This document shows positions 3,001 to 28,087 of a stretch of 64,000 nt of DNA, piece by piece. The DNA lies in assembly GCF_003704095.1 (NCBI RefSeq), contig NW_020843934.1:124001-188000 (forward strand), in the 5' to 3' direction. How positions within the stretch are numbered: position 1 is the first letter of the stretch; every line of letters begins with the position of its first letter. This DNA comes from Pocillopora damicornis (lineage: Eukaryota). Made by a program: the position numbers and the translations under genes. The notes beneath the pieces are model-generated. The model was not told where the DNA came from, made no database searches, and saw only the letters and a list, made by a program, of their open reading frames with translations.

Positions 3001-3161
3001 GAACATGAGCAGCACTAATCATCCAGTTTGACAGTTTAAGTAATTTGATCGCATTACGTCACATGCAGACGTGATTTCACGATGTTCCTACGACTATATG
3101 AAGCAGTACCTCTCAGCTCCTCGAAGCAATTCTAAGGTCCAGTTTTCCACACCAGATCAGT

Positions 3162-5873
3162 ATGCACTCGACTATTCATCGCGTCATTTTATTCTTGTGC
3201 GCCGCTTTACTTTGTACAGCAGGCCCCATTGAAAAAGAAGACACTGCAGTCTTTCTGAGACATCCACAAGAACAGTTTTGCTCAGCTGATTTTGGTAAGT
3301 CAAGATGTTTCATAGAAAAAAAAGTTGTCGAATACATGTAAAAAAATAGTTCGTGGCTTGTAGACGAGGCCTTTTGTTTGGGCCGAGGAACTCATCAAAT
3401 ACCTTTCAGAATTTTCAAGTGAATCCGTTGGGCACCGTGCTCAAAGTCTCGAAATGGTAATAGTATGGCTATCTACCACAGACGAACTCCAAACCGCACG
3501 TTCCCGAGTTAAATTTATATACACACAGAGAAAAAGAATTGTTGAAATAAACAAGTATCTGTAAATGATTTGATAGCGAAACAACGCACAAAGGGTTCTC
3601 CGTCTTAACGAAGTAACGTTGCGATCTTTCAAGGCCAACTTTATTTTTACAACAGGGAAATTTGCCTATAAACAAAATGAAGCTTTGATATAACACTGTT
3701 TTAGGCTATAAAAATACAAAACAGATAAGACCAAATCTGTTAAGGATGGCAAAGATTACAAGGATTGTAAATGATGACTTTGAAAAGATGCACAATTCTT
3801 TTAAATTTCTTTCTTGATGAATCCTAGTTTGCCCGAGCAATGGGAGTTCGTCAGAAGGGTCAATTTAGTTCACACAATAATTGAGCATGATCTCTCATGT
3901 AATCTAAAGCGGATACACGACGAATACGTGATTTTTGAAAAAAGTGTTAAGCGGAGCGTATATTTTCTCGGAAGTATCGCCCTTAAACGTTGCGTATTTT
4001 GTTAAGAAACAATATTTAAGATATGCATTTGGAAATTATTATTTACAATTGATGGAAGTAAAATTATTTGTACTCGTTGGAGGCCGGAAACAGTTTTTTA
4101 CGACTTTAATTTCTGTAATCTTTCGTGACTTGTGCATGGGGGGAAGGAACTTCACAGTACAATAGAAGGTTCGCCCAAAATGACGTCAAAACTAAACCCA
4201 GAACAAAAGCTATGAGCCAGACGTTGAGCGCAAATGTGGAGTAAGCATACATTTAGCAGCATATCTTAATCACAACTGTACAATTAGCATTTTTCTTTTA
4301 ACCCTTTAACTCCTAAGAGTGACTAACATCTAATTTCTCCTTTCAATATTTTGCTCTTGTATCAAACCGTTGAGAAACGTTGATCATTTAACGCTTGATG
4401 TCCCTTTCAGCAGGACTGACGTCTTTAAGAATTCTTTTTTTTGTTCGAATCTGTCGCCTGTGGAATAAACTACCCCTTAGTTTAAGGGAGTCAAATACCT
4501 TGTCGATCGTTCGTAAGAATTTGATGGCCTTTTATCATGATAAATTAAACGTAGATTTTTTTAGATTTTACACTGTACTTTACTAAATCATTAGTCCACT
4601 TATAATAATTTTATTGATTAGCCTTCATGTCGCATGTCTTTTATAACTGACTTGTTACACTAACGACTTTTTAGATAATTTTATTACTTAATTAATTCTG
4701 TAGATGTAATAATAAGTGGCCTATTTTTAAGGAGTCTTGTATTCTGTTTTAAGCCTACCTCAGATTTGTCATTTTACTTGTAAATCAGAAACTTGATTAA
4801 ATATCACCCCTGAATCACACAGTAAGGAAACAAAAACACAGGAAATGATCACCAACTAAACAGGCTCTTGAGTGTTACACAAATTTTCTCTGTCAGCACC
4901 TTAGGAAATGTATAGAGAACAGTACTGAGGATATGCATGCTATTGTTAGGATGTAAAGGATGTTCGGAAACTTCACGGTTTATCAGTAAAGTTGCGCATA
5001 GATTTTAAGATTCTTCTTATCACATCTAAAATACTTCAAAGCTTAGTTCCAAACTATCGTGAGAATTTAATTTCTATCTTGCCTGTTTCACATTATCAAT
5101 TTCGTCGCAATAATAATGGCACATTGCTTGAATCTCCACGATTCATAACGGAAAAGACTATGGGGGACCGATCATTTACAGTATTGGGAAGTTCTCTCGG
5201 GTAATCCCCAAGGAAGTTTCCGTTGGGTGCGATCAGAGAGTTCTGCAGTAGACAAACGAAGGAAAACGCACAAAGTTTCTATGAGAACAATATGAAGTGT
5301 CAATGAGAACTGAAAGACATTCTTTGCTTTGCAGCGGTCCGAGCCGAGGTCTTGCCGAAGAACCAGTCAAGAGAAGAGAACCACAAACAAAGTATATTCG
5401 AACACGATCTTAAAATTTATCAAATTTACAAAGGACAGGAGAAATTCCCGGACATCACCATCAACATCACTGCAGATAATGGTTCTTTCGTAAAAGCCTA
5501 CAGTGTTCACGTTGGGTTTCGAAGCAGCACTGAGTATTTCCTCGCTGGAAGTATCAAGAAAGGGGAAATTCTGCTGAATCAGCGTAGCTGGATTCAACCG
5601 TGGAAAGAAGTTACTAGCGAACAGCGTGAGGGAATTGAGAGATTTTACGGTCGAAACTGCGAATGCCATATTACACCGGCTTGCTTTGGAGCAATTGACT
5701 GCGTTCAGCCCTTGAAAGGATGCCAGGTCTCCCACGATTATCACACAATGCAACAATTCTACCAGGGCTGCGAATGGCGTTACTCTTACTGTATGAAAAA
5801 CAGGGAGGCAACCGCATGCTCATGGCAAGAAACCGCTGAGTATAGAAACTGCAGAGACAAAGTTTTACCTTGA
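3162..5873 (+). CDS. TIMP: TIMP-like secreted protein A (NTR/TIMP fold), 2 exons, lacks the N-terminal C-X-C; about 223 aa
   Basis: Exon 1 at 3162-3294 reads MHSTIHRVILFLCAALLCTAGPIEKEDTAVFLRHPQEQFCSADF, then G|gtaagt. Exon 2 at 5335-5873 follows a gcag acceptor and reads AVRAEV...IYKG...WIQPW...FYGRNCEC...SYC...ACSW...C. The phase-1 join is in frame. HPQxxFC, VRA, YKG and the C-terminal Cys pattern are TIMP hallmarks. Confidence 0.9.
4350..4799 (+). mobile_element. LINE (CR1/L2-like) 3' fragment inserted into a TTAA MITE, with an AATAT target-site duplication
   Basis: Encodes FFVRICRLWNKLPLSLRESNTL, typical of the LINE ORF2 C-terminus. The MITE halves at 4298-4349 and 4800-4958 rejoin seamlessly, with aatat on both sides. 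Confidence 0.65.
4960..5200 (+). mobile_element. LINE (CR1/L2-like) ORF2 C-terminal remnant
   Basis: RIDFKILLIT.K...L.P.Y...L...P......GDRSF motif. Confidence 0.7.
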
Positions 5874-7224
5874 AACTGACAGCAAATTAAAGATTAAAAA
5901 AAGGTAATTGAGGAACCATCAAAGGTTTCTCGTTGAAAAAGTATAAATATTATCTAACATATGGCCGTCTTGAATCAATATGACTTTTTTTCCACCTACA
6001 AAGAATGTTAATCATATGCAGCTTTGCTGATGTTAGCTGTGAGCAAATAATAAATGAAAATGCTGATATTAATAGTAAACACACCAGTAGCTTTCTCGCT
6101 CAACACACGAAATGCCTGACAACTGAATAAATTCAAAATTCTACGCAGAAAGTGCGGATTTCATTTAAAAAAAAAAAGCGGGGACAGGAGTTGATTTTTC
6201 TCTACCGTGTGTGGTAACCTGGTAAACTCTTCCAGAATTCTCCCCAGATGCCTAAAAACATTTTGACCTTGGTTTATTTACGATTACGCTCGTATTACTC
6301 AAAGGCCGCCCCGAGAATTTTCCAGCATTTCCATCAACATTATGATCAAGTTTTCTAGAAACCCAAAACAGTTTCGAACAGTTATGCACCCGGTTTTGTT
6401 TTCATTGCAGTCTGGAGTAAATTACGCTGTTTGTTTAGAGTTATATCCGTCTAGACTTTTAATAGTTCATGGTTCAATATTGCGGTCTCACATTTGGAAG
6501 ATAAGATTTTAATGAGTTCTTCCTACATCATGATGCACGGTCGATGGTCTGGCAAAAGGCATGAAAATTTTCATTTTAATCGATCATAAATTCGTTCCGT
6601 TATTAAAAATCGGAATTTGAGACCGTTCATTGGTAGTGTCGACAAGAATTGATCCTCGTTATCGGATTTCTCACGCAATATGGCAGATATTCTAATTTTA
6701 AGCTATAAATCCCTTTATTGAAGGATCAGTTTTCAAAAGAATATATATCAAGGATTGAAAAGCCGGAAAATCGTCTTAAAACCATCTATTTTGAAATAGT
6801 ATTGGAATTGCTATTTTTATTGCTACTTTACCGAGATCTGGTCAAGAGTTTGTTGACATTTGGGTGACTGTCGTCAGCAAAGAAGCATTGAAATCAGCAC
6901 AATTGAATTCACATGTTGTACTAAGGCTATTTTCTCCTTTAATGGTATTGACAAAAATTCGCACTCATTTTATTCTTTCCTACATTAAAATTGAAATAAA
7001 TGGACTAATGGGCGTTTTTCTCCCAGTCATCGACGCGGCACACGGCTTTGCGGCGTGGCGCCAAGTACAACATGCTCCAATTTCAGCCAAAAAAATTATG
7101 GCTTCATGCTGGTTCAACTTGCTATATAAGTGGCAAGACAATTTTCAGACGCAGTAATTGGTCATTCAGGCCTCGGAGTGTCAGCAGGAGTTTGCGTTCC
7201 TCGATTGAGAAATTAGAAAGAGAC

Positions 7225-7339
7225 ATGTCTCATCTCTTTTATATCGTTTTGCTACTTGGTGCAGTGAACACAGTTGATGCGTTACCATGTTCTTGCCCCG
7301 AGAGACATCCACAAGAGGTTTTTTGTAGTGCACATTTTG
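7225..7339 (+). CDS. TIMP: TIMP B exon 1 (signal peptide + LPCSCPERHPQEVFCSAHF); probable partner is the exon 2 assembled at 18027-18565 on the minus strand
   Basis: ATG at 7225 opens MSHLFYIVLLLGAVNTVDALPCSCPERHPQEVFCSAHF, followed by G|gtaagt (phase 1). A TATATAA box lies at about 7123. The downstream intron sequence links, through its duplicated copies (10513-11950 and 9992-10390, matching 18837-19045), to the 18565 acceptor. Confidence 0.85.
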
Positions 7340-7790
7340 GTAAGTAAAGCCCTTATTCTTGAAATGTTTTGAGAACTCGGACATTTTACGAGAGTGATGA
7401 TTGTTCCTCCTAACTAGTTGAGACTAATAGGATTTAAGGTTTTGATCATCTTGATTGTTCTATGGTTTTCTGGACTCTTCGTGGTCTCTACCTTGGTTTT
7501 CATTCGGTTTTATTGACTTGCTTTTCTTCCTCCTGGGTTAACTGTTTCTCCTCTTTTTGAATTTATCTTGGTAACGGTTTTCAGTTTTGTCCAGTTGTTT
7601 TTAGTCTTCGTCGAGTCTTTCTATTCAGATGAAAATTTCTATGAGAAACTCTTATGTCCCACGTATAAACTTGATTATCTTGAAAAGTCAATGGTCGAGT
7701 TTTGTTAAAACTGCAGTGCTGCGGAGCCCTTTTTTTGCGCCGATTCCCAAGCCTTTCTTCCTCACGGGAGTCCAGACAGCTAAAGTCAAC

Positions 7791-10700
7791 CTATTTTCGG
7801 GGGCGACTTCTTCGAGCGGTTGACTCATCAAATTCAAAGTAACGAAAAAAAAGGTACTATTATTGGAAATCTTGAGAATCTTTTGGTAAACCTGTCTCGA
7901 CTTTAAAAAACGTTTTGTTTTGTTTTTTTATTTTTTTTGCATAGAGAACTGGTAAGACCGTTAGTTCGAAACAAAAATCCTTGGAAAAACGATTTCAAAC
8001 TTCTTTTATGTACCGCGACCACAAAACTTAAAAAGCCAAGAGCAGTCCTGTAGTTACCCAACTGATTCTTAAAAACCAGGAGCCTTAACATACGAACTGC
8101 TTTAGTTTCGAAGTACAACAAAAAAAAACCCCGACAAGGGTTTACGTCATGTCTGGGTTTAAGGGTAAAAACGACATTTTCAAAGACTTATTTCGCAGGC
8201 CATATCTGTTTTATTTTGTAACTAGTGTATACGACCATCTGTACTTCTTGCAGCTACATGCACACTTGAAAGAATCCAATAACTTCAGTTTTTAAAAGAA
8301 ATGATGAAACCTCTAAAGTTATTTTTCAGTTTACGTTATGAAGGTAATAACCTGGGGTGTGTTAGAGCAAATTTTAATCAGTAAGTCTTTACAAGTCGAA
8401 AGCACTCGTCATCGATGAAGCTCTTACTTGGCAGAATGACTGCCTTATTTGAACTTTTTCCAAGACTTTTCTTGAGCTTATTAAAGCACGCCCTTTAAAT
8501 CAATGATATTGTATCCAACAGCGAAATCGGAACTTTTTCTAGGATTTCAATCTTCAAAAGGGACTAATATTTTTTGTTAACCCCAAGCTCGCCACAAAAC
8601 AAGCCTTCTGCATGTTTTCGACGGAATACCCAATTTCACCTCAAGCTGCATTCGCTTTCAACGTGCAAACTGGTGAATTTTAACAGGAAGGTATTACCAA
8701 AACACTAAAAATCAAATGAATAATCACATTGAAACAACAAAAAAACTGTCAAAGATTCGTAAAAACTCTATTACAAACGGGGAATGAGGGCGAATTTTAA
8801 ATAAATGAGGTCATTGGCCACAACAGCCACCTTCTTTAAGCTTCAGGTTTGGAAACCAAATCAAATCCTTTCCTGTTCACACTTACTTGAGAAAATATTT
8901 GCAGGGCTTTTCCAAACAAAGTTAATTTATCGTTTACTATCACATTATTTTTGGCCGGAAAGAGCATTTGTTTAATTAGTGAGGTTAGGTCACATGTTAT
9001 CCTTAGCAATTCTCTTAATTTCCTCCGTATTAATGTACTCTTAAAAATTCCTGAAGGCATAAATCAACAGAAATTCCACCCAGACAACAAAAGTTGATTT
9101 AAGAGCATTGGAGCAAAGTTTTTAATATTGGAATGTCGAAAGTATTCCGGATTAAATCGGAAAAAATAAATGTCTATGCTCCGTTATTCGAAAAGGAAAC
9201 TCGNNNNNNNNNNNNNNNNNNNNNNNNNNNNNNNNNNNNNNNNNNNNNNNNNNNNNNNNNNNNNNNNNNNNNNNNNNNNNNNNNNNNNNNNNNNNNNNNN
9301 NNNAAGAGCATGCGGTTTTCTCAGCATTTTGAATGCAGTAGGAATGACCCCATTCGCAGCTGTTGTGATCGATTCCAGAAGGCTTACCACACCCCTTTAG
9401 CTTCGGCTTCTTGTCACAAAACACAGTGTAACACGGCGAGATCTGACAGGCGCAGTTTCCTCGGTAAAACCGCCNNNNNNNNNNNNNNNNNNNNNNNNNN
9501 NNNNNNNNNNNNNNNNNNNNNNNNNNNNNNNNNNNNNNNNNNNNNNNNNNNNNNNNNNNNNNNNNNNNNNNNNNNNNNNNNNNNNNNNNNNNNNNNNNNN
9601 NNNNNNNNNNNNNNNNNNNNNNNNNNNNNNNNNNNNNNNNNNNNNNNNNNNNNNNNNNNNNNNNNNNNNNNNNNNNNNNNNNNNNNNNNNNNNNNNNNNN
9701 NNNNNNNNNNNNNNNNNNNNNNNNNNNNNNNNNNNNNNNNNNNNNNNNNNNNNNNNNNNNNNNNNNNNNNNNNNNNNNNNNNNNNNNNNNNNNNNNNNNN
9801 NNNNNNNNNNNNNNNNNNNNNNNNNNNNNNNNNNNNNNNNNNNNNNNNNNNNNNNNNNNNNNNNNNNNNNNNNNNNNNNNNNNNNNNNNNNNNNNNNNNN
9901 NNNNNNNNNNNNNNNNNNNNNNNNNNNNNNNNNNNNNNNNNNNNNNNNNNNNNNNNNNNNNNNNNNNNNNNNNNNNNNNNNNNNNNNNNNNCCTTCGCGG
10001 CCACCCTTTGGATTGTCACGCAAGGTTTCCTACATAAGAAGCGTTACTTCCCAAGAAAGCGTTGAGCAACATCGCCAGGGATGACTGAGATTTATTGAGT
10101 TCCAGGTTTAAAATAAGACGTATTCAAGCACTTGTTGAGCAACATTGTACATTAACTGGAACAAAAGAAACTGTTTACCTATGAAAAGGGTTCAAATCCC
10201 ACAGACACCGACTTGGCCACCGTGATGAGCGGAAGGGCGGGTGGGCATTAGTCAAACGGCGCGCGCGGTTGTCCAATAAACGCTGACCCCACCATTTTAT
10301 TTTCGCACACTCGCTTTTCCGACTAAGAGTCTTACGCAGTGTACTTCAAACGAAAGAAAGTAACCACAGCTGCCAATCAGAACAAGGTAAAAATGTTACG
10401 AAGAGCCAATCAGAACTCACAGTTAAAACAAGCAAACTGCAGCAGCCCAAAGCGCGGGAAAACGTGAATGACCAATCGCAGTGTTGTAGTGTCGCGTTTG
10501 ATGGGGAGGCACCGAGTTTCCTTTTCGAATAACGCCGGGAGCATAGACACATATTTTTTCCGATTTATTCCGGAATACTTTCGACATTCCATTTTTAAAA
10601 ACTTTGCTCCAATGCTTAAATCAACTTTTGTTGTCTGGGTGAAATTTCTGTTGATTGATACCTTCAGGAATTTTTAAGATTACATTAATACGGAGGAAAT

Positions 10701-11950
10701 TAAGAGAATTGCTAAGGATAACATGTGACCTAACCTCACTAATTAAACAAATGCTCTTTCCGGCCAAAAATTGAATTGGAGTCCCATCGTGATAATAAGC
10801 GATAAATTAACTTTGTTTGGAAAAGCCCTGCAAATATTTTTTTAAGTAAGTGTGAACAGGAAAGGATTTGATTTGGTTTCCAAACCTGAAGCTTAAAGAA
10901 AGTGGCTTTTGTGGCCAATGACCTCATTTATTAAAAATTCGCCCTGAGTCCTCGTTTGTACGAACGTTTTTAAGAATCTTTGACAGTTTCTTGTTGTTTC
11001 AATGTGGTAAATTCATTTGATTTTTTGTGTTTTGGGGATGGATACCTTCCTGTTAAAATTCACCAGTTTGCACGTTGAAAGCGACTGCAGCTTGGGGTGA
11101 AATTGGGTATACCGTCGAAAATATGCAGAAGGCTTGTTTTGTCGCGAGCTTGGGGTTAACAGAAATATTAGTCCCCTTTTGAAGATTGAAATCCTTAAAA
11201 AAAGTTCCGATTTCGCTGTTGGATACAATATCATTGATTTAAAGGGCGTTCTTTAATAAGCTCAAGAGAGGTCTTGGAATAAGTTCAAATAAGGCAGTCA
11301 TTCTGCCAAGTAAGAGCTTCATCGATGACGAGTGCTTTCGACTTGTAAAGACTTATTGATTAAAATTTGCTCTAACACACTCCAGGTTATTATCTTCATA
11401 ACTGAACGTAAAATGAAAAATAACTTTAGAGGTTTCATCATTTCTTTTAAAAACTGAAGTTATTGGATTGTTTCAAGTGTGCATGTAGCTGCAAGAAGTA
11501 CAGATGGTCATATACACTAGTTACAAAATAAAACAGATATGGCGTGCGAAATAAGTCTTTGAAAATGTCGTTTTTACCCTTAAACACAGACATGACGTAA
11601 ACCCTTGTCGTGTTTTTTTTTGTTGTACTTCGAAACTAAAGCAGTTCGTATGTTGAGGCACCTGGTTTTTAAGAATCAGTTGGGTAATTACAGGATTGCT
11701 CTTGGGTTTTTAAGTTTTGTGGTCGCGGTACATAAAAGAAGTTTGATATCGTTTTACCAAGGATTTTTGTTTCGAACTAGCAGTCTTACCAGTTCTCTGT
11801 GCAAAAAACAAAACAAAACAAAACAAAACGTTTTTTAAAGTCGAGACAGGTTTACCAAAAGATTCTCAAGATTTCCAATAATAGTATATTTTTTTTTTCG
11901 TTACTTTGAATTTGATGAGTCAATCGTTCGAAGAAGTCGCCCCGAAAATA
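7791..11950. repeat. About 1.4-kb near-identical inverted segment pair (7791-9203 vs 10513-11950)
   Basis: For example gggcgacttcttcgagcggttgactcatc (7801) is the reverse complement of the sequence ending at about 11943. The match is continuous with scattered SNPs and indels. Confidence 0.9.
9304..9474 (-). other. Small contig between two gaps, duplicating part of the TIMP exon 2 at 18077-18247
   Basis: The sequence appears identical to 18077-18247 and is flanked by N runs on both sides. Confidence 0.8.
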
Positions 11951-12826
11951 ACTCATCTTTAAATAGAGATGGATAATGTATGGATATTATCAGGAGATAA
12001 TTTTACAATATTTTAAAAGACTTAGGACTAATTCAATTATTTAAAATCAGAAAAACCTTTGAGCATGAATTTGCGATGTATCATTCACGCGTCGAACTAA
12101 CTTCTACATTGCACATATAAAATGGCAACTGTCATCGAGTATTGATGAAACATGTTAAAAATAAACCTAAATTGGTCTCATAGTTAACAAATACTACGTT
12201 CGTTAATTCTAGTTGGTTGTTCTTCTGAGAAAATTCGCTTTTTTGTCATGAAAACTGGAAGGGAAACATGATTGTTAATTTTGTCTTTCCCTATTGTCGT
12301 CGAAACTGCTTGTAAACAAGTATTCATTGTGTTTTTAAATCTTTGACTTTGAAAGCATATCTTCTCTCATTTTTATGGGTGATCAGTGCTCAAATTTTTC
12401 TCTAAAATTATATATATATGTCTATTGTTAGAAAATAAAAAAATTATCAACACCTAGTTTTTAGGAACAATTAAAAGAGAAAAATACTGTTTTATGTTAG
12501 AAATACAGCCTGCGGATCAAACGATCTAATTACAAAGGTAGTAATCTTCGCGGAAGACTCGAAATCATTAACCCTTTAACTCCCAGAAGTGATAAACAAG
12601 ATATTTCTCTTGATAATATCCACACATTATCCAGCAAACAAGTGATGAGAACACTAAGACTTATTAGGTTGAAGTTGTTAAGATGATCTAGCACCAAAAT
12701 CTCATAACTAATTTCCAAGCAGCTGGAAGGGAGAAGTAACAATCAGATCTTGGGAGATAAAGGTCAGGGCAAATTTTTATGTTCTATGTTTCGTTGCACG
12801 TGCTCTCTATTTAAAGATGAGCTATT
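11947..12826. mobile_element. Putative non-autonomous DNA transposon (about 880 bp) with 23-bp terminal inverted repeats
   Basis: aataactcatctttaaatagaga (11947-11969) matches tctctatttaaagatgagctatt (12804-12826) as reverse complement at 22/23 positions. A TTAA-type MITE sits inside at about 12568-12762. Confidence 0.6.
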
Positions 12827-12872
12827 AGTCTCGAGGTCGTTATCTTTTTTCGCACAATTTTGAGTAGTCTAA

Positions 12873-15619
12873 CTAGGGCCGGGGGTTAGCCATGCACTCC
12901 TTGTACTTTGGTGTTTCGTACCAGGAGCACGCGGTCCCTTTGGAGTTTTTCACACAATAGGAGTGGTCCCACTCACAAGGGTTCCTGTAAGGAGACAGAT
13001 AGTTTGAAGCACATCCTTTGAGCTTTCCGCAGTCTCTGCCGTGACACGGTGCAAGCTGACAATCACAGTTTTGCCCATAGAAGCGCTTGATACCAACACG
13101 TACAGCCTGGCGCTTGAGGACTTGGGACCAATCTTGTACAAAATTGCATAAGCTCACCCAAAGTTTACCGTTGGCAAACCACCCGAAGATGACGTACCTT
13201 TTGCCGTTCTGAATCCCGATAAGACCACACCTCGTGGCACTACTTTTGAAAGTGTAGACCTTGGCAAAAAGACTTCCCTGGTTGGACCCATAAGACCGAA
13301 CTCCCTCGGTTTTGTTTAGTGCTGTCGCTCCCTTGTAAGTCTTCAGGATTCGCATACCGATTATTTTTTTGTGCCCCTCTACTTCTTGGGACAAAATCTT
13401 CGCACGTATCACTGAAAACGAAACAAGAATTAGGTTCATCTTATCTTCTTTTCACCGAATGAACACAATTACTTCCAGTCAAAATAGAAATAATGATTAT
13501 TAGGATATTAGAAGTATTTTATATAAAACAGTTTCAGTAAACTATCTTTAAGGACAATTCTAAACACGAAAAACAAATTCATCCAAAGATATGTTTAATA
13601 AGAAAAGTCTTCATCTGTAATGGTTAGCGACTAACATTCCGCTGTATCATAAGGGGGCTGGGTGAAACTGGGTCAGTATATGAGAATGCAACATGTTCAG
13701 GAGTCTTTCGATCTGCCTTGGCAAACTAGTAATAAGAATTCGGAAACTTGAGAGAAAAAAAATCAAATCACGAAATTCTTTAAACGAAAATGTGCACCAG
13801 CCAAAAAGGAGAATCGCTTATGAGATCTTGGTAGTGCAAATGTCTCTGTTCGTATCAGTGTGTTGTTAGGAGCTTGAATAGGTGAACATGACCAGAAACC
13901 AGGATTAATAATGTAGTTCAGAAGAACGTGCCTTGCGGCAAATGGAAATGATTCCTTTAGCTCTTGTTCTACTAACTGGATATTTAAAAGTTGAACTATA
14001 AGGATCAGTGTTTCTCGTGATTTGACCTTGACATGAGAAATTTAGGTCTCGCAAAAAATTCCACCTCAACCTTCGCAATGACCAACACAAAGAGTCTAAC
14101 CTCTAAAACTATTTCCGTTCTCAGTGGAGGCTATCGCAGCTAAACTTGAAGTACCTTTACAGAAGTTGCCAGCACTGGAGGAAGCCTCACAAAACGCTAG
14201 ATTAGAAACGTTATTTTGTCCCAAGAACAAACCAATAGTTCAAATTATGCGGGTAATATCAGCGTTTAAATCGAAGCGAAAAATGGTGACTGCGTGAAAC
14301 AGAGCAAAACGAAGAATCGGAGCTATTTCTAAGGCGGGAACATAGCACGCACGTTTTTACAGCCATATCTGACCACACTATCGGTGCTTTTGTAAAAACA
14401 TAAAAGTTCCCTCTGCGCAGCACGCGAGCTACGTACCCGGTGAAGATAATGATTGATAAAGTGGAGATCAAAGCAACCCGCAAAGCCAGCTAAAACAACA
14501 CCAATATTCGGTTCATATTTCAATAGGAAATTGAGTGATTTTTCCTTGTTTGGTTTTCTCCTTTCCTGCGGAGTAATTCAAGTTCTTCACAAGATTCTTT
14601 CTCTCGGTCTCTGAACCGATCAATTACAATGATGCTTGTACGGACTGCTGTGTGAGCGCTCCGATCTGAGCTTCAATTTACTCAAGGATGCTACTCTTTC
14701 TAAAATGCGAGTACTTATTCGTGATATTGTGACATCAACGGAAGGATTATGTGCTTTGTTCATAAGTGGATAATTATTTTGAACAATCTACAAAGCCCAA
14801 AAAGCAAACAGAAAGGACGTTAGAGGTTGTTTGTGCAAACAAATGGGCTGTTTGTTTTATCTTGAGATGAAAGCACACATCTTCGACAGGAAGTGTCGAT
14901 GATACATAGAAGAAATGTTGAAACGCCAATTAACAATTGGTTCATGTTTTAGCGTGCGCTATCGAGTTATGGAGCACGTGGGAAGTTTGGAGAGCACGAA
15001 AGAAGCGTGAGACTTGCCCGAGGCAATAGCCGAGGGCAACTCTAGCTTCTTGAGTAACGGTTTTCAGTTTCATCCAGTTGTTTTTAGTTTTAATCGAGTC
15101 TTCCTATTCCGATGAAAATTTCTATGAGAAACTCTTATGTCCCACGTATAAACTTGATTATCTTGAAAAGTCAATGGTCGAGTTTTGCTAATTTATAGCG
15201 TTTTTTCGCAGTATATATACCGGTGAAGAATGCAAAAGAAATACAACTGTTTCATGCCAACTCGAAAGTCGAAAAGTTGACCCGCTAAATGAACTCGGTG
15301 GACGATTAGATTCTGCATAAAACTCTGCCCAAATAAAACATACTCTTCAAGGACGCCCTTAAAACAGTTCTTTTACTACTAGGAAGTCAATATTTTGTTT
15401 GAGAAGTGCACCATGTGTGCGCGAGCAAGAAAAAGCGAGGGCGCCGTGAGTTTTACCATGGAATTTCAAACACCTTTGTCTTACAGTCTAGTGAATGATT
15501 CGCAACTTACCAAATCCCGCATTACAGAAGGCTTCCTGGGGATGTTGCGGCCTACAAGTACAGGCCTGGCTTAAAGCCACGAGACCTAGGAACAAAGCAG
15601 CATGAACGATAAAGGACAT
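12873..15619 (-). CDS. TIMP: TIMP C, canonical two-exon TIMP (mature N-terminus CTCRPQHPQEAFC); about 215 aa, 14 mature Cys
   Basis: Exon 1 at 15619-15511 reads MSFIVHAALFLGLVALSQA|CTCRPQHPQEAFCNAGF, then G|gtaag. Exon 2 at 13411-12873 follows ttttcag and reads VIRAKIL...TYKG...TRCG...SLCNFVQDW...NCDC...ACSW...KEC. A TATATAA box lies at about 15724-15730 (minus strand). Confidence 0.92.
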
Positions 15620-16709: not shown

Positions 16710-16804
16710 AAATAGTTGGAGCAGAGTTACACGGAAGTTAAAGAGAAGAGGAACATTTTTTAGACCAGAGGAGGATGGAAGTAGAAGTAGAACAAATTCA
16801 GTAG

Positions 16805-18026: not shown

Positions 18027-18565
18027 CTATGGTTTCACTTTGGTGATGCAGCTCTTGTAGTGACTGGTTTTACGCCAAGAGCATGCGGTTTTCTCAGCAT
18101 TTTGAATGCAGTAGGAATGACCCCATTCGCAGCTGTTGTGATCGATTCCAGAAGGCTTACCACACCCCTTTAGCTTCGGCTTCTTGTCACAAAACACAGT
18201 GTAACACGGCGAGATCTGACAGGCGCAGTTTCCTCGGTAAAACCGCCGTACCCCAAGACGCTGGCGCACAGTGATTTGAGGCCATTCTTGGTTCCAGTGA
18301 CACTGATTGAGCTCTAGCTTTCTTTTCCTGACCTGGCCTGAGATGAGGTACACTTTGTTGTTATTCAGTTTGACCCCGCACAGGCTATCAAGAGTAAAGG
18401 TGTAAGCTTTGGCAAAAAGGCTTCGCTGTCTCGAGCCGTAAACATTGACGCTGTCCATCTCATGGAGTCGGTGTTCTCCTTTATATGTTTTCAGGATGCG
18501 GAGGTCGAAGATACGAGTAAAATTGTCGAGGTATTCCTCTTGAAACAAAACCTTTGCTCGGATAA
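18027..18565 (-). CDS. TIMP: TIMP exon 2 (type B/D); no exon 1 is assembled on the same strand
   Basis: After a tctag acceptor it reads (V)IRAKVLFQ...TYKG...DSLCGV...NQCHW...NCAC...SYC...ACSW...KSC. Phase 1 is compatible with exon 1 at 7225-7339. Confidence 0.88.
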
Positions 18566-19146
18566 CTAGACATGGGAAGGAAAAATACAGATAGTAACAA
18601 TGTTTTCTAGTACACCGTAACTAGGAAACTATTTTTTTCATTGTAGCGCCATCTTTCTGTATATGAACCACACATAGCCCACAATTCCTCCACTCGCTTG
18701 GATGAAGGGCTTACGCTCGAAATGCTCGAATCCCAATACAAGTGATAAAATCAAATGATCTTGTAATAACCCCCGCAGACACAGCACCACAGTTTCTTTT
18801 TCTCTCTAGAAACAGTCAGTCTCCTTCGCGCTTTCGCCTTCGCAGCCACTCTTTGGATTGTCAGGCAAGGTTTACTACATAAGAAGCGTAGGGCGGGTGG
18901 GCATTAGACAAACGGCACGCGCGGTTGTCCCACAAACGCTGACCCCACCATTTTATTTTCGCACACTCGCTTTTTCGACCAAGAGTCTTACACAGTGTAC
19001 TTCAAACGAAAGAAAGTAACCACAGCTGCCAATCAGAACAAGGTAANNNNNNNNNNNNNNNNNNNNNNNNNNNNNNNNNNNNNNNNNNNNNNNNNNNNNN
19101 NNNNNNNNNNNNNNNNNNNNNNNNNNNNNNNNNNNNNNNNNNNNNN

Positions 19147-19249
19147 CGAATGGGGTCATTCCTACTGCATTCAAAATGCTGAGAAAACCGCATGCTCTTG
19201 ACGTAAAACCAGTCACTACAAGACCTGCATCACCAAAGTGAAACCATAG
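19147..19249 (+). pseudogene. TIMP: 3' end of a second copy of the B/D TIMP exon 2 with a premature stop (TGG to TGA)
   Basis: Reads EWGHSYCIQNAEKTACS*RKTSHYKTCITKVKP* with TGA at 19199-19201, where the 18027-18565 copy encodes Trp. The 5' part is hidden in the gap at 19046-19146. Confidence 0.7.
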
Positions 19250-20623
19250 GAACTGAACAAAGAACATGCAAAAAAAGACTAAAACGAAAGAGAGGGAGAG
19301 AGAGAAAAGAGTAAAACACTTTAATATTAGCCAATTCACTTCGTTAGTTTTAGACTTTTAGAAAAAAAAACACACACAGAATGCCGAGTATGGCTGATAG
19401 ATATTTTCATTAACCTAATGACGTTTTTCTCGATCTTTGTATCATGAATGGCAAATTTTTGCCAAGATTAAACCAAACGTTTTTAAAAGGAAATTTGATT
19501 GAAAAAGTCGTCCCAGAAGTGTTTTCTAAACCAATAACTGCCAACGTGAAAACCACGGCCAAGTCAGGAACTGATACTATGAAGAGAGGTAAGGTCCTTT
19601 TCGCCCACCCACCTCCCCTCGGCATTTCATCAGGCTTCCCTGAGAATTCAAGGTAGAGAGGTACTGTGAGATGAGAGTGTTTTGCCCAAGAACATAACGC
19701 TATGCCAGGTCTCGAACCAGGACCTCTCGACCCAGGACCTCTCGACCAGGAGTCCAGTGCAATGAGCATTAAGCCACTTCGTCTCTTACTGATACTATAA
19801 AGAGGTGAGGGTTTATCCTCTGGTCCTCCTTCTGTCTTTATGTTTCTACGTTTCTCTTTCCATCCGTTCTTTTGTCCGTGTATTCCTCTGTTCCTTTGTA
19901 TATTTGTTCCTATTTTTCCTCTCAGTTTAACCGTTCCTCGTTTTCTATTGTCCTTGTATACTTTTAATCCTCTGTTCATTTCGTCCGAGCTCTTTTTATA
20001 CCTTATCATGTTCCTCTGTTCTTCTCTTGCCCTATTCTCGTGTTCCTCTGTTCCTTTGTTTCACTGTTCCACTATTCCAGTGTTCTACTATTCCAATCTT
20101 CCACTATTCCAATATTTTACTATTCCAATCTTCCACTATTCCAATCTTCCACTATTCCAATATTTTACTATTCCAATCTTCCACTGTTCCTACTGAATTT
20201 GTTCTACTTCTAATTCCATACTCCTCTGGTCTAAAAAAATCCTCCGAGTCCCCTCAAGCGTTAAAAAAATGGCCCCTGACGTTTCATCACAAAACATGCA
20301 CGGCAGATGACATGACAGGAATGTGCCAGTTAACTTCATGTTTTATAAAGGAAGTGAGAAATAGGACGCTTATTTCACACTTTAAGAGGAAATACGGTTT
20401 CGTAACACATATTTCTGCTGCTTACGCGTTTCAGCGACGCATGGCACGGAGCTTTCGTCAGCTGCACCCGGCTCTGCGGGATATCACATTTGACACGCGC
20501 TGATGATGTCAGTATATAAGCTGCAACTGAACCAGCTATCAGATACAGCAATCACTCTTTTTAATCCTCAACAAGCGAGGCAAAGTAGAGAGTTGAAGTG
20601 TACAACAACGACACAAGGAGAGA

Positions 20624-20732
20624 ATGTCCTTTATCGTTCACGCTGCTTTGTTCCTGGGTTTCGTGGCTTTAAGCCAGGCCTGCAGTTGTATGCCGCAACA
20701 TCCCCAGGAAGCCTTCTGCAATGCGGGATTTG
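20624..20732 (+). CDS. TIMP: TIMP C' exon 1 (second copy or allele; mature N-terminus CSCMPQHPQEAFC); exon 2 not assembled, probably lost at the gap 21642-21741
   Basis: MSFIVHAALFLGFVALSQA|CSCMPQHPQEAFCNAGF, then G|gtaag. It differs from 15619-15511 at 7 of 109 nt. A TATATAA box lies at about 20513. Confidence 0.85.
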
Positions 20733-23217
20733 GTAAGTTGCGAATCATTCACTAGACTGTAAAACTAAGGTGTTTGAAATTCCATGGTAAAATGTAACTC
20801 ACGGCGCCCTCGCTTTTTCTTGCTCGCGCATACATGGTGCACTTCTCAAACAAAACATTGACTTCCTGGTAGTAAAAGAACTGTTTTAAGGGTGTCCTTG
20901 AAGAGCATATTTTATTTGAGCAGAGTTTTATGCAGAATCTAATCGTCCGCCGAGTTCATTTAGCGGGTCAACTTTTCGACTTGAGTTGGCATGAAACAGT
21001 TGTATTTATTTTGCATTCTTCACTGATATAAATACTAGGAAAAAACGTTATGAATTTTCAGAATGCTCATAGAATCTAAGTGAAGAATCAACAAGCTCCA
21101 CAGTTTCATGATTTAAGCCTAATTTTAACACCAGAGTACAAGCGTTATTTAGGCCTGTTTGTGATAGACTGTGCACCTACTGAATTACAGCAGTTCTGAA
21201 AATTGTGTAACCTGCAGTCGAACTCAGTAGTTTCAGTTAGGCGATGCATTCAAAGCCACCCAAAAAGCTAACCCATCAGCAGCCTTCATCACTTCAAACG
21301 CGCGAAGCATTCGATACTTAAAAGAGGAAATTGGCGTTTCAACATTTCTTCTATGTATCATCGACACTTCCTGTCGAAGATGTGTGCTTTCATCTCAAGA
21401 TAAAACAAACAGCCCATTTATTTGCACAAACAACCACTAATGTCCCTTCTGTTTGCTTTTTTTGTTATGATATGCGGTCGCTTTGTAGATTGTTCCAAAT
21501 ATTTATCCACTTATGAACAAAGCACATAATCCTCTCGTTGATATCACGGATACGCACTCGCGTTTTTAAACGTGTAGCATCCTTGAGTAAATTGAAGCTC
21601 AGATCGGAGCGCACGCTCAGCAGTCCGTACATGCATCATTGNNNNNNNNNNNNNNNNNNNNNNNNNNNNNNNNNNNNNNNNNNNNNNNNNNNNNNNNNNN
21701 NNNNNNNNNNNNNNNNNNNNNNNNNNNNNNNNNNNNNNNNNGGTTTTTCTGATTTTAAATAATTGAATTAGTCCTAAGTCTTTCAAAATATTGTAGCGTT
21801 GAGTCTAAGTTACATTTTGAAAAAGTAAGAATAAAATTAGTTCAAGACAAGCTGTGACACATGTTGATTACGATATCTTATTTTAAAAGAGTAATTCTGT
21901 TCCGACTGTTGAAAATTTACTGTCATTCACAAATTTTTTTGCAGCTTTTATGTGAATGTCAATTGACTCAAGGTCGTTAAGCCAAACCACAGTGATCACA
22001 ATGACCAATCAGAACAAAGGAAATATCACAAGGAACCAATGAGAATTCACAGAAGAAACACGCAAACTGCCTTAAGCGCGGGAAAACAAAAGGGGCAAAG
22101 TCGCACTTGGTTTTATCTTTGTATCTAATTGGTCGAGAGGGTGGCGCGAGTTTTCAAGACCAATAAAAGATCGTCTCGAAGCGAAATCAATACATTTCCG
22201 GAATACTCTCGAAACTATGTTGAATACTGTTCTATATATACTCTGACACGGAGGATCACATAATACGACCGGCACATAATTCTGATTACCTCGTTCCCGA
22301 GCCATCGAGAGCTCAAACATGAAAGAAGCACATTGCCTGAGGCGCGAGAACACGCGAGTTACAAGTCGCGATTAGATTTAGTTTTTCATCTAAATGGCTG
22401 AGAGCTTAGCGCCAGTTTTCTGGACCAATCACTGGACGCAATAAAGCAAAACAAATACAATGACTCTTCAGTTAATGAGACAATGCTCCCAGCGACGTTA
22501 TGCTTATAGGAGCTGGAGAAGAAACATAAATATGTAGCAAAGCGCGAGCCAGGAAATTAGGAATTATCATTTGTTTGTTATAGTCTGTACCATTTGTGAT
22601 AATTTAAGGTTATGTGTGAAGTTACGCGTTACAGTATTTTTAAGGCAAAATTGACTGAGACGACGATTCGTAAATGTGTTTGCCTTTGGTAATTTCCTAC
22701 CCATCCACGTTCCTTATTTATAAGATTAGTCGGTACTTCTAAGTAAGACTAAAGCTATAACCTGAGCTTAGCTCCTTAACTGGGCACAAAATAGAAAGAA
22801 CTGAAGCGATTAACACTGAGTTGAATGCCCTATATGAACTGTAATAGCTAAATCGAATCTTTTATTAACGCGCACTTCTGACCCAGACAAAATAAACCAC
22901 GGTGATGGTCCGATATTTTGGTTGAACAGAGGCAAGTTGTCTCAAAGTCCCTTAAATACTAACGCGATATTTTTAAATATGCCCGAAATAAAGAAGCCAT
23001 GGTCCAGTTTATGAAATTCTCAAATAATCAGTTTAGAACTGTTAGATTGCAAAAACAACAATAAAGAAAAAAGCAAAGAGATTCGCCGCCAAACGACGCA
23101 TTCACACGCAGGGTGGCAAGATTACTAGCTTGCTACCCACTCGGCGTCTTCTTGTAACGATTACGTTAGTCGTTTATTGTGGGATTTTAAAGCAACTTTG
23201 TTTGTTCACTCCCCTAC

Positions 23218-23428
23218 TTAACCTTTTGACCCTGAGAGTGACTAGTATGTAATTTCTCCTTACAATACTAACCATGAATTACACATTAAGGTAACGAGAG
23301 TAAAGGAAATGATCACCAACTCAAGAAGCTCTTGATTGTTATACAAAATCTTCTCGTCAAAACCTTTGGAAATTTATAGAGAACAGTATGGAGAATATGC
23401 ACACTGATATCAGGGTGTAAAGGGTTAA
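23218..23428 (+). mobile_element. About 210-bp TTAA-flanked MITE (piggyBac-like ends); many related copies in the window
   Basis: ttaa|ccttttgacc...gtaaaggg|ttaa. Related copies lie at about 1828-2032, 4298-4958 (split), 12568-12762, 34420-34625, 41690-41805, 45866-46052, 46483-46691, 53008-53198, 60820-61030 and 62310-62492. Confidence 0.75.
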
Positions 23429-24915
23429 TTCTTAGCTCAAGCTTGGCTCCAAATCTATTATTTCTATTTTCAATTTCAATTTCTTTAAAACACTTTTGAC
23501 ATTACGGATCATGCAACGCATGTCAGTTAGGAACCTTGTGTATGGCTTACTGTGGTAAAGAGTTCATCTCAGGCGGTAGAGCACCCGACTGCGAAACTAC
23601 ATGGAAGATGTAATTTTCGACCTTTCAATGGAGTTTTAAATCGATATTTTGGTGTAATATAGGAAATTTGTCCCCATTTAGTTTCAATTAACGATGCAAT
23701 ATTTTTAACTATGACCACCTGTATCGAAACTATGATAGGCACGACAGCAAATCTTCAAGGGTTTCTTTGTTCTTTGCTAGATGAAGTTGCTAAAACTCTC
23801 TCTTTCTTATACATTTCACCAAAATTGCTAAAAAGGAGGAACTTTTATACGATTTTTAATTCTGTAAATGTTGGCGTCATCACAAGGGGAAACATGCAAT
23901 CTGTTGGAAGGCCGGTGTAAATTTGAAGTGACGAGAGAACCCATCACACCAATTATTAAAACTGGACTGACTTCTCTTGAACGGAAAGATTCATTAGTTT
24001 GCGGCCTTCAGAACCACTTCTATCTGCAGAGAGGAGGAAGTTAGATACATTTCAATCATTACCGGGGCACTATTTGTGTGGTATTTTGTCGGCATTTTGA
24101 ACCACTTAATTAAAACTGCTGGCGTGTTGCAGAATGATGCCTGTTGCAAGTCACTGATAGAAGTTATTGATAACCTCTTTTTTCCTTATTTAGCTTTTAA
24201 CAGGTAGTTCACGTTCCCACATGCATTTACATCGTTAAAGTTTGAATTTGATTTTCAAGTGAAGCAACTTGACGTTAGCAATGTGAATTTTCAGTGGTAA
24301 AAAGGCGTGGTAACCGACACGGAGAACTGAAATAACTGAAAATGTTCAATTCTGTATATGTCTTTACAGTCCACAAAAATGCAAGGTACAGCTACATTAT
24401 GACACACACCTAAAACGAAATATGGATCCTCAACCACTTCCAAGAAAGAAACTGCCTGGTAATATATACTAAATCGTAGTAAATTAAGCAATTTTAAAGT
24501 TGCCAACTCTCATAACAAATGACTGCAATCATTGTGTAGTTAATCACAGTTCCATTCAAGTCACTGAGCTCATGAGAACAACTTAGAACTTTCCTTGTTT
24601 GGTTTGTTTTTTCGTTTATTTCACTTTCAGTCCCTGACATACGTCATCGTCTGCCGGCGAACTCGGCATAATTAGAGGCAAATATTTCATGTTAGACTTC
24701 ACTTAAAAGATAGACTAATGAGATTAATCTTTTGGCCGGATTCATTAAAATAATCCAATAAATTTTATTGGAAAAATTGAAAACTTTTCATTGGTAGATT
24801 ACCAAGATTCCTTTCTAGAGTATACAAGACAGATCTTTTGGTCAGGACATCAGAAACAGGTTGAGGTACGACGGTGACAACTGTGCTGTGTTCTGAAGTA
24901 AAAACAGGGCTTCCA

Positions 24916-27662
24916 ATGGCAGTGCTTCTCTTCCTTTTTACGATCTTCCTTTGTGTAGTGACCATAAATGAGGCATGCTGGTGCACTCAAGCTCACCCGC
25001 AGTCAAGATTTTGCAGCGCAGATTTTGGTGAGTACAGGTGATATCCTTTTATTAGCTACCCACATTACGTTCAGTAATCATTTTAAACCCGTCATCTACA
25101 TTCACAATTATTTTCATGCGCATTTTCATCTTTTCACATTTAAAAGATATACCAGTGCTCCCAACAGTTCAATCAAATCTTGACAGTATGATTTATATAC
25201 ATGTACTTTTTGACATTTTTAAATTTACTGAATTTCATTAGTCATGCCCTGGGTTGTTTGTTTTACTAATGTGGACGGCAGAGACTTTTAATATACAAGC
25301 GCAATCAACCCAATACGAGCTTTGCTCTCATTGGTGCGAGGTGTAGAAATGGAAAAAAAACCTACTCCTATACTGTTGGATAATTGAAATATTCGGACAA
25401 AACAACTGAATCTTCGACTGAGTGAAATTACCTTTGTCTAGAAATGATAACAGTACAACATTTTAAAAGATTATCCGTTTTACTCCTTCTTTCAATTGAA
25501 TCTTTTATCTCTTTATGAAAGTTCTTTTTTCTCCTAACTGGAGGCACGGAGGGAAATGAGATCTTGTAACTTGGCAAATATACAAATATTTTGTCCACAG
25601 AATTCATAAAAAAAAAACACATTGACGACACTAACAACAGGTTATTTTCCAAGATTGGAGAAAACTTAATACTGTTTTGTTATTCTAGAACAGGATTGTC
25701 GCATCTTGATCTTCACCTCGCTAATACCGTTTGTAAGATAATTCGTCCAGTTCTGTCGCTGTCGCAACGGAAAGGTTAAGAGGAACGATGTGATAACAGA
25801 ACAGAGGTTGAGGCGTTTTGCCAAAGACCTTATTTAAGTGACAATGAGCCACAGAGCTCGAAACATGATTCACGACAGAGCGGCAATTCAAATCGTCGGT
25901 TGCCCCCTTAAATGTATTTGCGTAAGCCCAATGCAAAGATCCGCTGAATTACCAATAAGCTCGTAAGAATTCCCGTCATCACCACGATTTTAAAATGGCC
26001 GGAAGGTTCGGAAATACAAATCTGTGATCACAACAAAATTTACAGGAGCAAATTCATTTCTATGGCCCTATTGAGGTTTTCAAAAATATAAACACAAACA
26101 ACAGCAATAACAACAATGACGAGCCGGAGGTAAGTATGGTGTGATATCTGAGGTTACGGCGATGTGCCAGAGGCCTTATCAAAATGGCAACGAGCCACAG
26201 AAATCGGAAATTTTGTTGAAGAGAGAGCAGAAATTCCTAGTGGTCGGGATGCCCCCTTAAAAATAATTGCATAAGCCTGTGATCACTACAATGAAAAAGA
26301 AGCTTATGAGAAACTACATAATCACTCAATCTCTAAAATGGCTCATCGTTACTTCACAATTAAAAAAACAAAACAAAACAAAACAGAGGAAATACAGGAT
26401 TGGGGTTGTTTTAAAAAAAAAATGAAAAAGATACTTGATGTAGCCAATAGCACCTGGGTGAGCCGTGAAATGCCACTTATGTTAAGATTTTAGATTTGTA
26501 TACCCCGGCCGCCGGATAATTAACAACTGTGAGACGAGAATCAACCCCAATCCATACGCTCTCTCGCACTCAAAAATTCGCGGACTCTTTCTCGTTGTGC
26601 GCATTTTCGCTGCTCTTCAAGGTTCCTTAACTTTCGACCTTTACGCATCGAAGCTGTAACTTGTAAACTGCTGACGATTCATTCGTGACGGAATTCAGAA
26701 AAATTATCTCTCTCACATTCTGCGGCTCATTGCCAGCCATTAAAAAATGATCCTTGACCAAAATAGACACTGCGTTGAGTGAGATGTTAATTGAGTGTTC
26801 GGTGTTTTATGCCCATGAGGAGAAGGTAGTCAAGGACACAGATCTTTTAATCGGATATGGCAAACATTGCATCACGAAATTCGGCTCAGTAGTGGTTTAA
26901 TAATTCTTTCCTTCCTTCAGTGTGGGGGATGTTACGAAATAAGCTAAATTCAACGTTTTTTTATAATTCTTGATTCTTCTTTGCTTGCTTGGTTAGCTCA
27001 AGTGCGCTAAATAGACTCCCACAAACACGAGATGCTTTGTTAATGATTGTCTAAGGAAGGTTACGCCCACCCTGTTAACGTAAAACATTTCTGACTTTAC
27101 AGCCATTCGCGCTAAGGTTTTGAACGAGTCTTGGGACAACAGCAGCAGAATTTATACCCTCAAGGTCTTCAAAGCCTTCAAGGGGGGCAAGAAAATTGAA
27201 CGCGTTGCCGAGATGCAAAGTGATACGGGAAAACGCAGGAAAAACGTTGTCCAAGTCACAACAGAGCTCGACTCAGCCGCTTGTGGCGTACGCCTTCAGA
27301 TTTCTAAAATCTACATTCTGCTCGGCTACGTAGAGAACCAACACCGAAGACCATACAAAGGAAAGAAAAAGTTGACGATAGAATCGTGCCAGTGGCACTC
27401 GTTATGGAACGACACCACTGCTCAACAACGTCGCGGGCTCAAGAGGATTTATGGAAAATACTGCCTGTGTAATATTGACAAGTACTGCTTCAAAGAAAGA
27501 CCAGAGCTCTGCAAAGATTTGATTCAAGGATGCCACTTACAAGGAAGTGATGATCGCATGAAGAATTGCAGAGCAAAGCATTCTTACTGCGTGAAAGGCC
27601 GCAAAAAATGTAGATGGATCGCGCCTCAAAAGGCCGATTTAAAAAAATGCATGAGTGCTTGA
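24916..27662 (+). CDS. TIMP: TIMP E, two exons, mature N-terminus CWCTQAHPQSRFC, very basic; about 223 aa
   Basis: Exon 1 at 24916-25027 reads MAVLLFLFTIFLCVVTINEA|CWCTQAHPQSRFCSADF, then G|gtgag. Exon 2 at 27103-27662 follows ttacag and reads AIRAKVL...AFKG...SAACGV...ESCQW...YCLC...SYC...CRW...KKC. Confidence 0.92.
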
Positions 27663-28087
27663 AAATTTCATTTCAAAAAAAAAAAAGTGGTCATCATTTA
27701 GTTCTTTAAGTTGTAAACACACAGAGAGCGACGAATAGATCATGTATTGGATCTAAATTAGAACTAAGCTTTTGTAAATAGTCTATAAGTCAGGCTTATT
27801 GTTACGGTTATTAACCAAATAGGAACAGACTCGACAAGAAATTGTTGCTTTACAGTATTAAGACAAACCCCTTCTAGGAGGGGATTTCAATCGCTGCAAT
27901 AAAACTGTACTCAGTTTGAAAGTTTATGCTATTGTTTTAACTTATTAAAATAACGAAGAACTTTTGATGCACAACTACCAAACCACTCCATGTCGCCAAG
28001 ATAAATTTCTTGTAAAACATTTACATAACATTTGATACTAAAAACTACTTTATCCCACCATGAACAAATTTAAGAAGTATCACTCAC

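Follow-up and report, generated by a model that had tools for sequence, protein, structure and literature searches.

Does an intron of a coral synapsin gene house a whole family of TIMP genes and, if so, how are these genes oriented and are they still diversifying? These questions are raised by a stretch of 64,000 nucleotides from Pocillopora damicornis (contig NW_020843934.1, positions 124,001 to 188,000, here C569:124001-188000, in an assembly of 234.35 Mb and 4393 contigs). The whole of this stretch is called the window, and positions are counted from its first letter unless the contig is named. Very probably, intron 5 of synapsin contains a tandem array of six TIMP genes, T0 to T5, together with one dead exon copy, all of them antisense to synapsin in the real genome; a block of this array has been inverted in the assembly, and the array is old and evolves under purifying selection.

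The host intron and its TIMP genes

The window holds the first five coding exons of synapsin. The first four, recognized by matches to the Pfam family Synapsin (PF02078) and by splice sites read from the sequence, encode the Synapsin N-domain and the start of Synapsin_C; with four coding exons upstream of it, the exon that ends in KEM is coding exon 5. The parts of the host gene that frame the array are the following.

31007-31227, 30456-30516, 29017-29108 and 28473-28629 (span 28473..31227), minus strand: synapsin coding exons 1 to 4
28088..28177, minus strand: synapsin coding exon 5, 30 amino acids FAQLIQ...YPNYKEM, followed by the donor gtgagt; Synapsin_C positions 13-47
1..28087, minus strand: the part of synapsin intron 5 within the window, continuing to C569:113093
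C569:113030-113092, minus strand: synapsin exon 6, 63 nt, phase 0, LITPKFPVVVKVGHANGGYGK (PVVVKVGHA...), Synapsin_C positions 46-66

An earlier note, made from the letters of the window, had placed the TIMP genes in the synapsin intron after the KEM exon. It had put the end of exon 5 (YPNYKEM, then gtgag) at 28088 of the minus strand and had found no exon 6 in the left 28 kb. All of this was borne out, 28088 being the last coding base. Synapsin exon 6 is absent from window positions 1-28087, including the region at 27.7-28.1 kb where its presence would speak against nesting, and lies instead 10.9 kb to the left of the window. Therefore, the nesting stands and intron 5 measures about 39 kb (C569:113093 to 152087, 38,995 nt as assembled). 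In a six-frame Pfam scan of the whole genome, Synapsin_C is confined to C569, indicating a single synapsin gene; the match in the window (28082-28186, profile positions 13-47) is followed by matches at C569:112272-112418, 111628-111756 and 110959-111075. Every TIMP exon of the array sits between the KEM exon and the PVVVK exon.

The TIMP exons were found with stop-to-stop open reading frames and motif scans, the short first exons being recognized as a signal peptide followed by the motif ...HPQ..FC..F. Exons were searched one by one, and full-length proteins were taken from database entries only. Six two-exon genes resulted, in addition to the dead copy of T2 exon 2 that is treated below.

C569:119332-119443, antisense to synapsin: T0 exon 1, mature start CSCL; left of the window, in the same intron
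C569:123019-123608, antisense to synapsin: T0 exon 2, Pfam TIMP E 6e-22
3162..3294, plus strand: T1 exon 1, signal peptide then GPIEKEDTAVFLRHPQEQFCSADF; mature start GPIEK, no Cys-x-Cys
5335..5873, plus strand: T1 exon 2, coding sequence with stop, TIMP E 6e-21; without the partners of Cys1 and Cys3
7225..7339, plus strand: T2 exon 1, MSHLFY...VDALPCSCPERHPQEVFCSAHF; mature start LP-CSCP
18027..18565, minus strand as assembled (inverted block): T2 exon 2, TIMP E 2e-22
15511..15619, minus strand as assembled, due only to the inverted block: T3 exon 1, mature start CTCRPQHPQ
12873..13411, minus strand as assembled: T3 exon 2, TIMP E 7e-19
20624..20732, plus strand: T4 exon 1, mature start CSCMPQHPQ; the assembly lacks the matching exon 2
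24916..25027, plus strand: T5 exon 1, mature start CWCTQAHPQ
27103..27662, plus strand: T5 exon 2, TIMP E 8e-16

The gene structure is uniform. All TIMP introns are in phase 1 with GT..AG ends, the donor (G/GTAAGT or G/GTGAGT, the stroke marking the splice site) standing right after a Phe codon and the acceptor (CAG or TAG) before ..IRAK or VRAE. Membership of the family is clear from exon 2, which in T1, T2, T3 and T5 matches Pfam TIMP (PF00965) with E 8e-16 to 2e-22 over profile positions 19/20-183, and the PDB sequence matches of array members are TIMP-1, -2 and -3. The Cys1-x-Cys3 motif, together with the partner cysteines that correspond to Cys70 and Cys99 in TIMP-1, is present in T0, T2, T3 and T5 and, as far as exon 1 goes, in T4. 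T1 has no Cys-x-Cys, and both of its partner cysteines are replaced by Ser. Judged by eye, the hydrophobic core of the signal peptide is followed by A/C in T0, T3, T4 and T5, while T2 reads VDA-LP-CSC; the Cys-Ser-Cys of T2 aligns with residue 1 of human TIMP-1, -2 and -3.

The array genes carry NCBI annotation already, and XP_027060662.1 (P0048) and XP_027060660.1 (P0103) equal our T2 and T5 models residue for residue. The annotation of Pocillopora meandrina (P0049, 270 aa) starts T2 at an upstream ATG, which corresponds to window position 7072 (7072-7224 being extra). Both the signal peptide and the models of 217 aa favour a start at position 7225.

With respect to the TIMP genes, the earlier note was right in part. 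It had described the intron as a site of tandem expansion, whose paralogues differ at the protease-contacting N-terminus and of which one lacks Cys1, and this is confirmed; the N-termini GPIEK, LP-CSCP, CTCR, CSCM and CWCT are as it had read them. Its count of four types has to give way to six genes. T0 came to light when the scaffold was extended leftwards, CTCR and CSCM, taken together there as one type, belong to the separate genes T3 and T4, as is evident from the loci of Pocillopora verrucosa and P. meandrina, and the exon at 18027-18565, taken as a minus-strand gene of its own, is exon 2 of T2 within an inverted block.

An inverted block and its gaps

As assembled, the array is disordered. 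T3 shares the strand of synapsin, and so does the exon at 18027-18565; T2 exon 1 lacks an exon 2 to pair with, and the CSCM exon 1 is oriented away from every exon 2. T0, T1, T2 exon 1, T4 exon 1 and T5 are antisense even so; T2 exon 2 and T3 become antisense only after correction of the block. The features on which this correction depends are these.

9304..19046, no strand assigned: inverted scaffold block, bounded by 100-N joins at 9204-9303 and 19047-19146
9304..9474, minus strand: dead T2 exon 2 copy, middle part, a 171-nt island 100% identical to 18077-18247
19147..19249, plus strand: dead T2 exon 2 copy, C-terminal end, with a premature stop (a Trp codon changed to a stop); 53 identical bases overlap with the flipped island
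21642-21741: gap, a 100-N join that hides T4 exon 2; about 2.6 kb are missing, by the spacing in P. meandrina
9475-9991: gap that conceals most of the dead T2 exon 2 copy
16889-17091: gap of 203 N within a 16/32-bp tandem repeat between genes

Flipping the block brings every TIMP into antisense orientation and supplies T2 exon 1 with its partner, the exon at 18565-18027. The block can be recognized as inverted because database proteins, transcript contigs, a sequence overlap and colinear loci in relatives all agree. T2 exon 1 and the exon 18565-18027 are joined exactly in P. damicornis P0048, in P. verrucosa P0047 and in P0055, whose 909-nt Logan contig is taken as a transcript; the Stylophora pistillata protein XP_022786637.1 (P0003) starts like T2 exon 1 and is then 88% identical to the exon 18565-18027. 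RNA contigs break off precisely where the T2 donor is predicted, at 7339, and one 909-nt contig runs 714 letters further, beyond the compared stretch. Furthermore, the reverse complement of the island 9304-9474 ends in the first 53 bases of the contig 19147-21641, an exact overlap, while neighbouring contig ends as assembled show no overlap. Finally, the flipped order (T2 exon 1, T2 exon 2, T3, dead T2 exon 2 copy, T4 exon 1) is that of the gapless loci of P. verrucosa and P. meandrina, exon for exon and with a spacing within about 0.1 kb; the exon order in Stylophora also matches. In both sister species, the dead copy is frameshifted.

One could maintain that the assembly is correct as it stands, with two TIMP genes on the synapsin strand, T2 exon 1 as an orphan remnant and the CSCM exon 1 as an inverted duplicate. 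This is the order and orientation that the window displays. Against it stand the proteins P0048 and P0055 that join the two T2 exons, the 53-nt overlap of the flipped island with the next contig, the two 100-N scaffolding joins that flank the block, and the flipped order in Stylophora, P. verrucosa and P. meandrina, where, as in Oculina and Porites, every TIMP is antisense; such a reading is scarcely credible. The wrong-strand copies and orphan exons are the result of one inverted scaffold block and of a collapsed join that hides T4 exon 2.

Self-comparison of the window reveals further duplicated pieces: 7792-9203 repeats 10513-11950 in inverted orientation at 93%, and the contig 19147-21641 does the same for 14627-18129 at 86-98%. 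Since the island 9304-9474 and the pieces of this contig stop at gaps and match 14627-18247 with 86-100% identity, they could be regarded as leftovers of the second haplotype, in which case only five genes would exist and CTCR and CSCM would be alleles. We consider this highly improbable. In the gapless P. verrucosa and P. meandrina loci, T3 is likewise followed by a dead T2 exon 2 copy and then by the CSCM exon 1, and the presence of this unit in two sister species argues against the haplotig reading of the duplicated pieces. Moreover, the CSCM exon 1 of P. meandrina T4 is 100% identical to that of the window and has its own intact exon 2, which is only 85% identical to that of T3, and dS between the CTCR and CSCM exons 1 amounts to about 0.2.

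The exons of T1, T2, T3 and T5 are uninterrupted by gaps. Tandem repeats accompany two of the genes: a 92-bp repeat (6 copies) and 16/32-bp arrays lie upstream of T3 exon 1 (window 16152-17322), and a 16-bp array is also found upstream of T4 exon 1 (20067-20190). These repeats translate into long spurious open reading frames at 17129-17458 and 19801-20500. Left uncorrected in the P. damicornis reference, the inverted block and the concealed exon would lead to errors in gene annotation, in counts of expression and in any comparison of copy number made here.

In general, guest genes in sense orientation would disturb the transcription of their host. The strict antisense orientation of the corrected array would fit this rule.

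Age and selection of the array

Five further coral assemblies, of Stylophora, P. verrucosa, P. meandrina, Oculina and Porites, show the same picture: all TIMPs of the compared stretch are antisense within a synapsin gene call that spans this whole stretch, and here too they lie between the KEM and PVVVK exons. Stylophora has T0, T1, T2 and T3 antisense in synapsin and, beyond the compared stretch, a T5 protein (P0093) on the same 2.1-Mb contig. Oculina patagonica has four antisense TIMPs in synapsin, Porites harrisoni three within 26 kb, and on a coral contig from ENA five TIMPs adjoin a Synapsin_C exon on the opposite strand. In a maximum-likelihood tree of the exon-2 proteins, a Porites sequence falls into the T0 clade, an Oculina sequence into the T2 clade, and T5 groups with sequences of the ENA contig; when one long branch is left out, the second Porites gene joins T1 with support 99/99. 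T0 orthologues in Orbicella and Porites are 75-86% identical. A word-based protein search aimed at sea anemones and octocorals gave only coral-like matches. Because orthologues of T0, T1 and T2 occur in Porites or Oculina, the core of the array is, as judged from these sequences, older than the split between complex and robust corals.

The N-terminal states are conserved as well. The CWC start is common to the T5 genes of Pocillopora and Stylophora, and T2 of Stylophora likewise has two residues, here SQ, before Cys-Ser-Cys. Cys-less T1 is found in Stylophora, in Porites and in three further 50%-identity clusters (one of them metatranscriptomic), all without the partners of Cys1 and Cys3. The rates of substitution between Pocillopora and Stylophora, at a dS of 0.23-0.42, are as follows.

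T0 exon 2: dN/dS 0.075
T1 exons 1 and 2: dN/dS 0.23-0.25
T2 exon 2: dN/dS 0.14
T2 exon 1: dN/dS 0.43
T3 exon 2: dN/dS 0.34
T3 exon 1: dN/dS 0.46

Across this range, from 0.075 to 0.46 and with tiny samples for exon 1, there is no sign of positive selection between these two genera; the values indicate purifying selection and not an arms race. A recent burst specific to Pocillopora, with positive selection on the protease-binding N-terminus in an arms race with microbial or host proteases, would agree with residues 2 and 4 being the places where the paralogues stand apart most visibly, and the dN/dS of exon 1 (0.25-0.46) does exceed that of most exon 2 sequences. It is nevertheless very unlikely. 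Orthologues of T0, T1, T2, T3 and T5 exist in Stylophora, of T0 and T1 in Porites and of T2 in Oculina, the N-terminal states are kept across genera, all dN/dS values are below 0.5, and exon 1 contains the fast-evolving signal peptide. Orthologous arrays, conserved N-termini and dN/dS below 0.5 together point to an old and stable division of labour instead of ongoing rapid diversification. The earlier note had asked for a comparison of anthozoan loci and a TIMP tree, and the comparison yielded antisense arrays, the tree orthologous members in them. Its picture of a diversifying expansion has to be corrected in two respects: the expansion is not a lineage-specific novelty, given the orthologous arrays of Stylophora, P. 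verrucosa, P. meandrina, Oculina and Porites, and the diversified repertoire does not appear to be undergoing rapid change.

The nesting itself has been dated before. Candiani et al. 2010 (PMC2825198) described an antisense SYN-TIMP nest for Nematostella and derived from it an origin before Bilateria; the inference of the earlier note that the nesting is older than the cnidarian-bilaterian split thus holds, but was already published. Like the coral, Nematostella vectensis is a cnidarian with a TIMP antisense in one synapsin intron at a position conserved in metazoans and with independent TIMPs elsewhere (PMC2825198). For Nematostella a single nested TIMP is reported, as against six with a dead exon copy in this coral and at least three in other stony corals. 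Tandem expansion within one synapsin intron is also known from the sea urchin Strongylocentrotus purpuratus, with ten TIMPs, and from Ciona intestinalis, with two (PMC2825198). These are independent deuterostome expansions, while the coral array is common to stony-coral families and has a conserved member that lacks the inhibitory cysteines. Antisense nesting is likewise seen in vertebrate SYN1/TIMP1, SYN2/TIMP4 and SYN3/TIMP3 and in Drosophila Syn/Timp (Pohar et al. 1999, as cited in later papers), with one guest per host gene in contrast to six in one here. Vertebrate TIMPs have five coding exons and 12 cysteines, the coral genes two coding exons and 14 cysteines. The sequence at the first coding intron (...FCNxxF / VIRAK...) is presumably shared with human TIMP-1.

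A transcriptome-based survey of the TIMPs of cnidarians (Nicosia et al. 2016, PMC4860685) called for more data on nesting. In literature searches, including searches by the Stylophora accession numbers, no paper describing the coral array was found. The present results are largely an expected extension of the published nesting; what they contribute is the conserved cluster, its old disarmed member and the correction of the assembly. The oldest known animal host-guest gene pair is thereby extended to reef corals, where the guest became a conserved small gene cluster.

Expression, possible roles and other genes

For T1, the joint 3294/5335 (intron 3295-5334, GT..AG) is spliced in RNA contigs from four runs of three studies, and contigs of exon 2 extend as a 3' untranslated region to about 7000. 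Proteins of 233, 217 and 223 residues that are equal or nearly equal to T0, T2 and T5 are encoded on Logan contigs (assembled from public sequencing runs) of 0.9-2.1 kb, which are taken as spliced transcripts because they are too short for both exons and an intron of at least 2 kb. RNA depth figures are contig-based, and no ranking of expression was drawn from them. A short repeat in the T1 intron (4300-4350 and 4800-4925), present also at 1885-2012 and 23281-23408, is covered by RNA contigs at very high depth, with many joints that disagree with one another, and probably represents a dispersed, transposon-like element transcribed from numerous genomic sites.

The array very probably arose by tandem duplication of the ancestral nested TIMP. 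In complexes of TIMPs with MMPs, Cys1 chelates the catalytic zinc and residue 2 enters the S1' pocket. By analogy, T0, T3, T4 and T5 are predicted to be secreted inhibitors of metzincins, in whose active site they would chelate the zinc through a free Cys1. Residues 2 and 4 (S/L, T/R, S/M and W/T) would tune the fit to the S1' pocket; Ser, Thr or Trp at residue 2, which would enter that pocket, predict different protease preferences. T2 may bear two extra residues before Cys1 and, if Leu-Pro is kept in the mature protein, could be a blocked or latent inhibitor. Canonical inhibition by T1 would be impossible because Cys1, Cys3 and both partner cysteines have been lost, and T1 is probably a ligand, a decoy or a matrix protein. 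It has dropped the zinc-chelating cysteine and is yet under selection, which may make it a starting point for non-inhibitory roles of the TIMP fold.

It could also be imagined that the paralogues with Cys1 are redundant broad inhibitors of the same specificity, kept for dosage or for different domains of expression, as human TIMPs are established to overlap widely in their targets. We judge this to be unlikely, although less so than the alternatives weighed above. Position 2 ranges from Ser and Thr to Trp, the Trp is kept in Stylophora T5, and the paralogues are only 27-47% identical in exon 2.

A more far-reaching proposal is offered tentatively, as one that may well turn out otherwise. In the order-conserved TIMP cluster that stony corals keep in synapsin intron 5, the second member, T1, would be a non-inhibitory TIMP-fold protein, in existence since before the complex/robust split, without both wedge disulfides, and expressed. 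Its role might be that of a ligand, a decoy or a factor of the matrix, conceivably in the remodelling of tissue or skeleton, and the unbroken antisense nesting might reflect regulation shared with synapsin and not inertia.

Several points weigh against the reading of an old, corrected array with divided functions. Inhibition, targets and a decoy role are extrapolated from the structures of vertebrate TIMPs, and the LP extension of T2 is uncertain, with its cleavage site judged by eye. The expression evidence covers four of the six genes, T0, T1, T2 and T5. The exon 1 values of dN/dS are based on 36-44 codons only. The joining of the T2 exons is derived from database proteins, the 53-nt overlap and synteny, and there is a slight chance that the block represents a true inversion polymorphism in the sequenced colony.

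A second TIMP cluster is situated outside synapsin, at C2494:1-57200. It comprises at least four short TIMP-like genes, whose exon 2 matches only the N-domain part of the exon-2 profile (to about 110) and ends in ...KKC; beside three of them lies an exon 1 in which an insertion separates Cys3 from the FC motif. The cluster further includes a canonical TIMP gene (31-33 kb) and two genes of the Cys-less kind (52-57 kb). Like T1, this Cys-less pair consists of intact family members without Cys1, Cys3 and both partner cysteines. Unlike T1, the pair stands outside synapsin, and in the tree it groups with another TIMP of the same contig and with T0, not with T1. A single clade of all Cys-less TIMPs, when tested, was not rejected (p-AU 0.056).

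As to the host protein, a skeletal proteome study (PMC7115838) reports the Stylophora pistillata 'synapsin-2-like isoform X2' (XP_022786582.1) from each of the four protein fractions of the skeleton, a distribution shared with just one other protein. The presence of a synaptic vesicle protein in such fractions is odd, and TIMP is unmentioned in the main text of that study.

Upstream of synapsin, the window contains an open reading frame with a BEN domain (39296-40111, minus strand) and one of 666 aa without a Pfam match (42572-44572, plus strand). Two similar MFS_2 transporter exons (49733-50266 and 58423-58953, both on the plus strand), 8.7 kb apart, probably belong to tandem genes.

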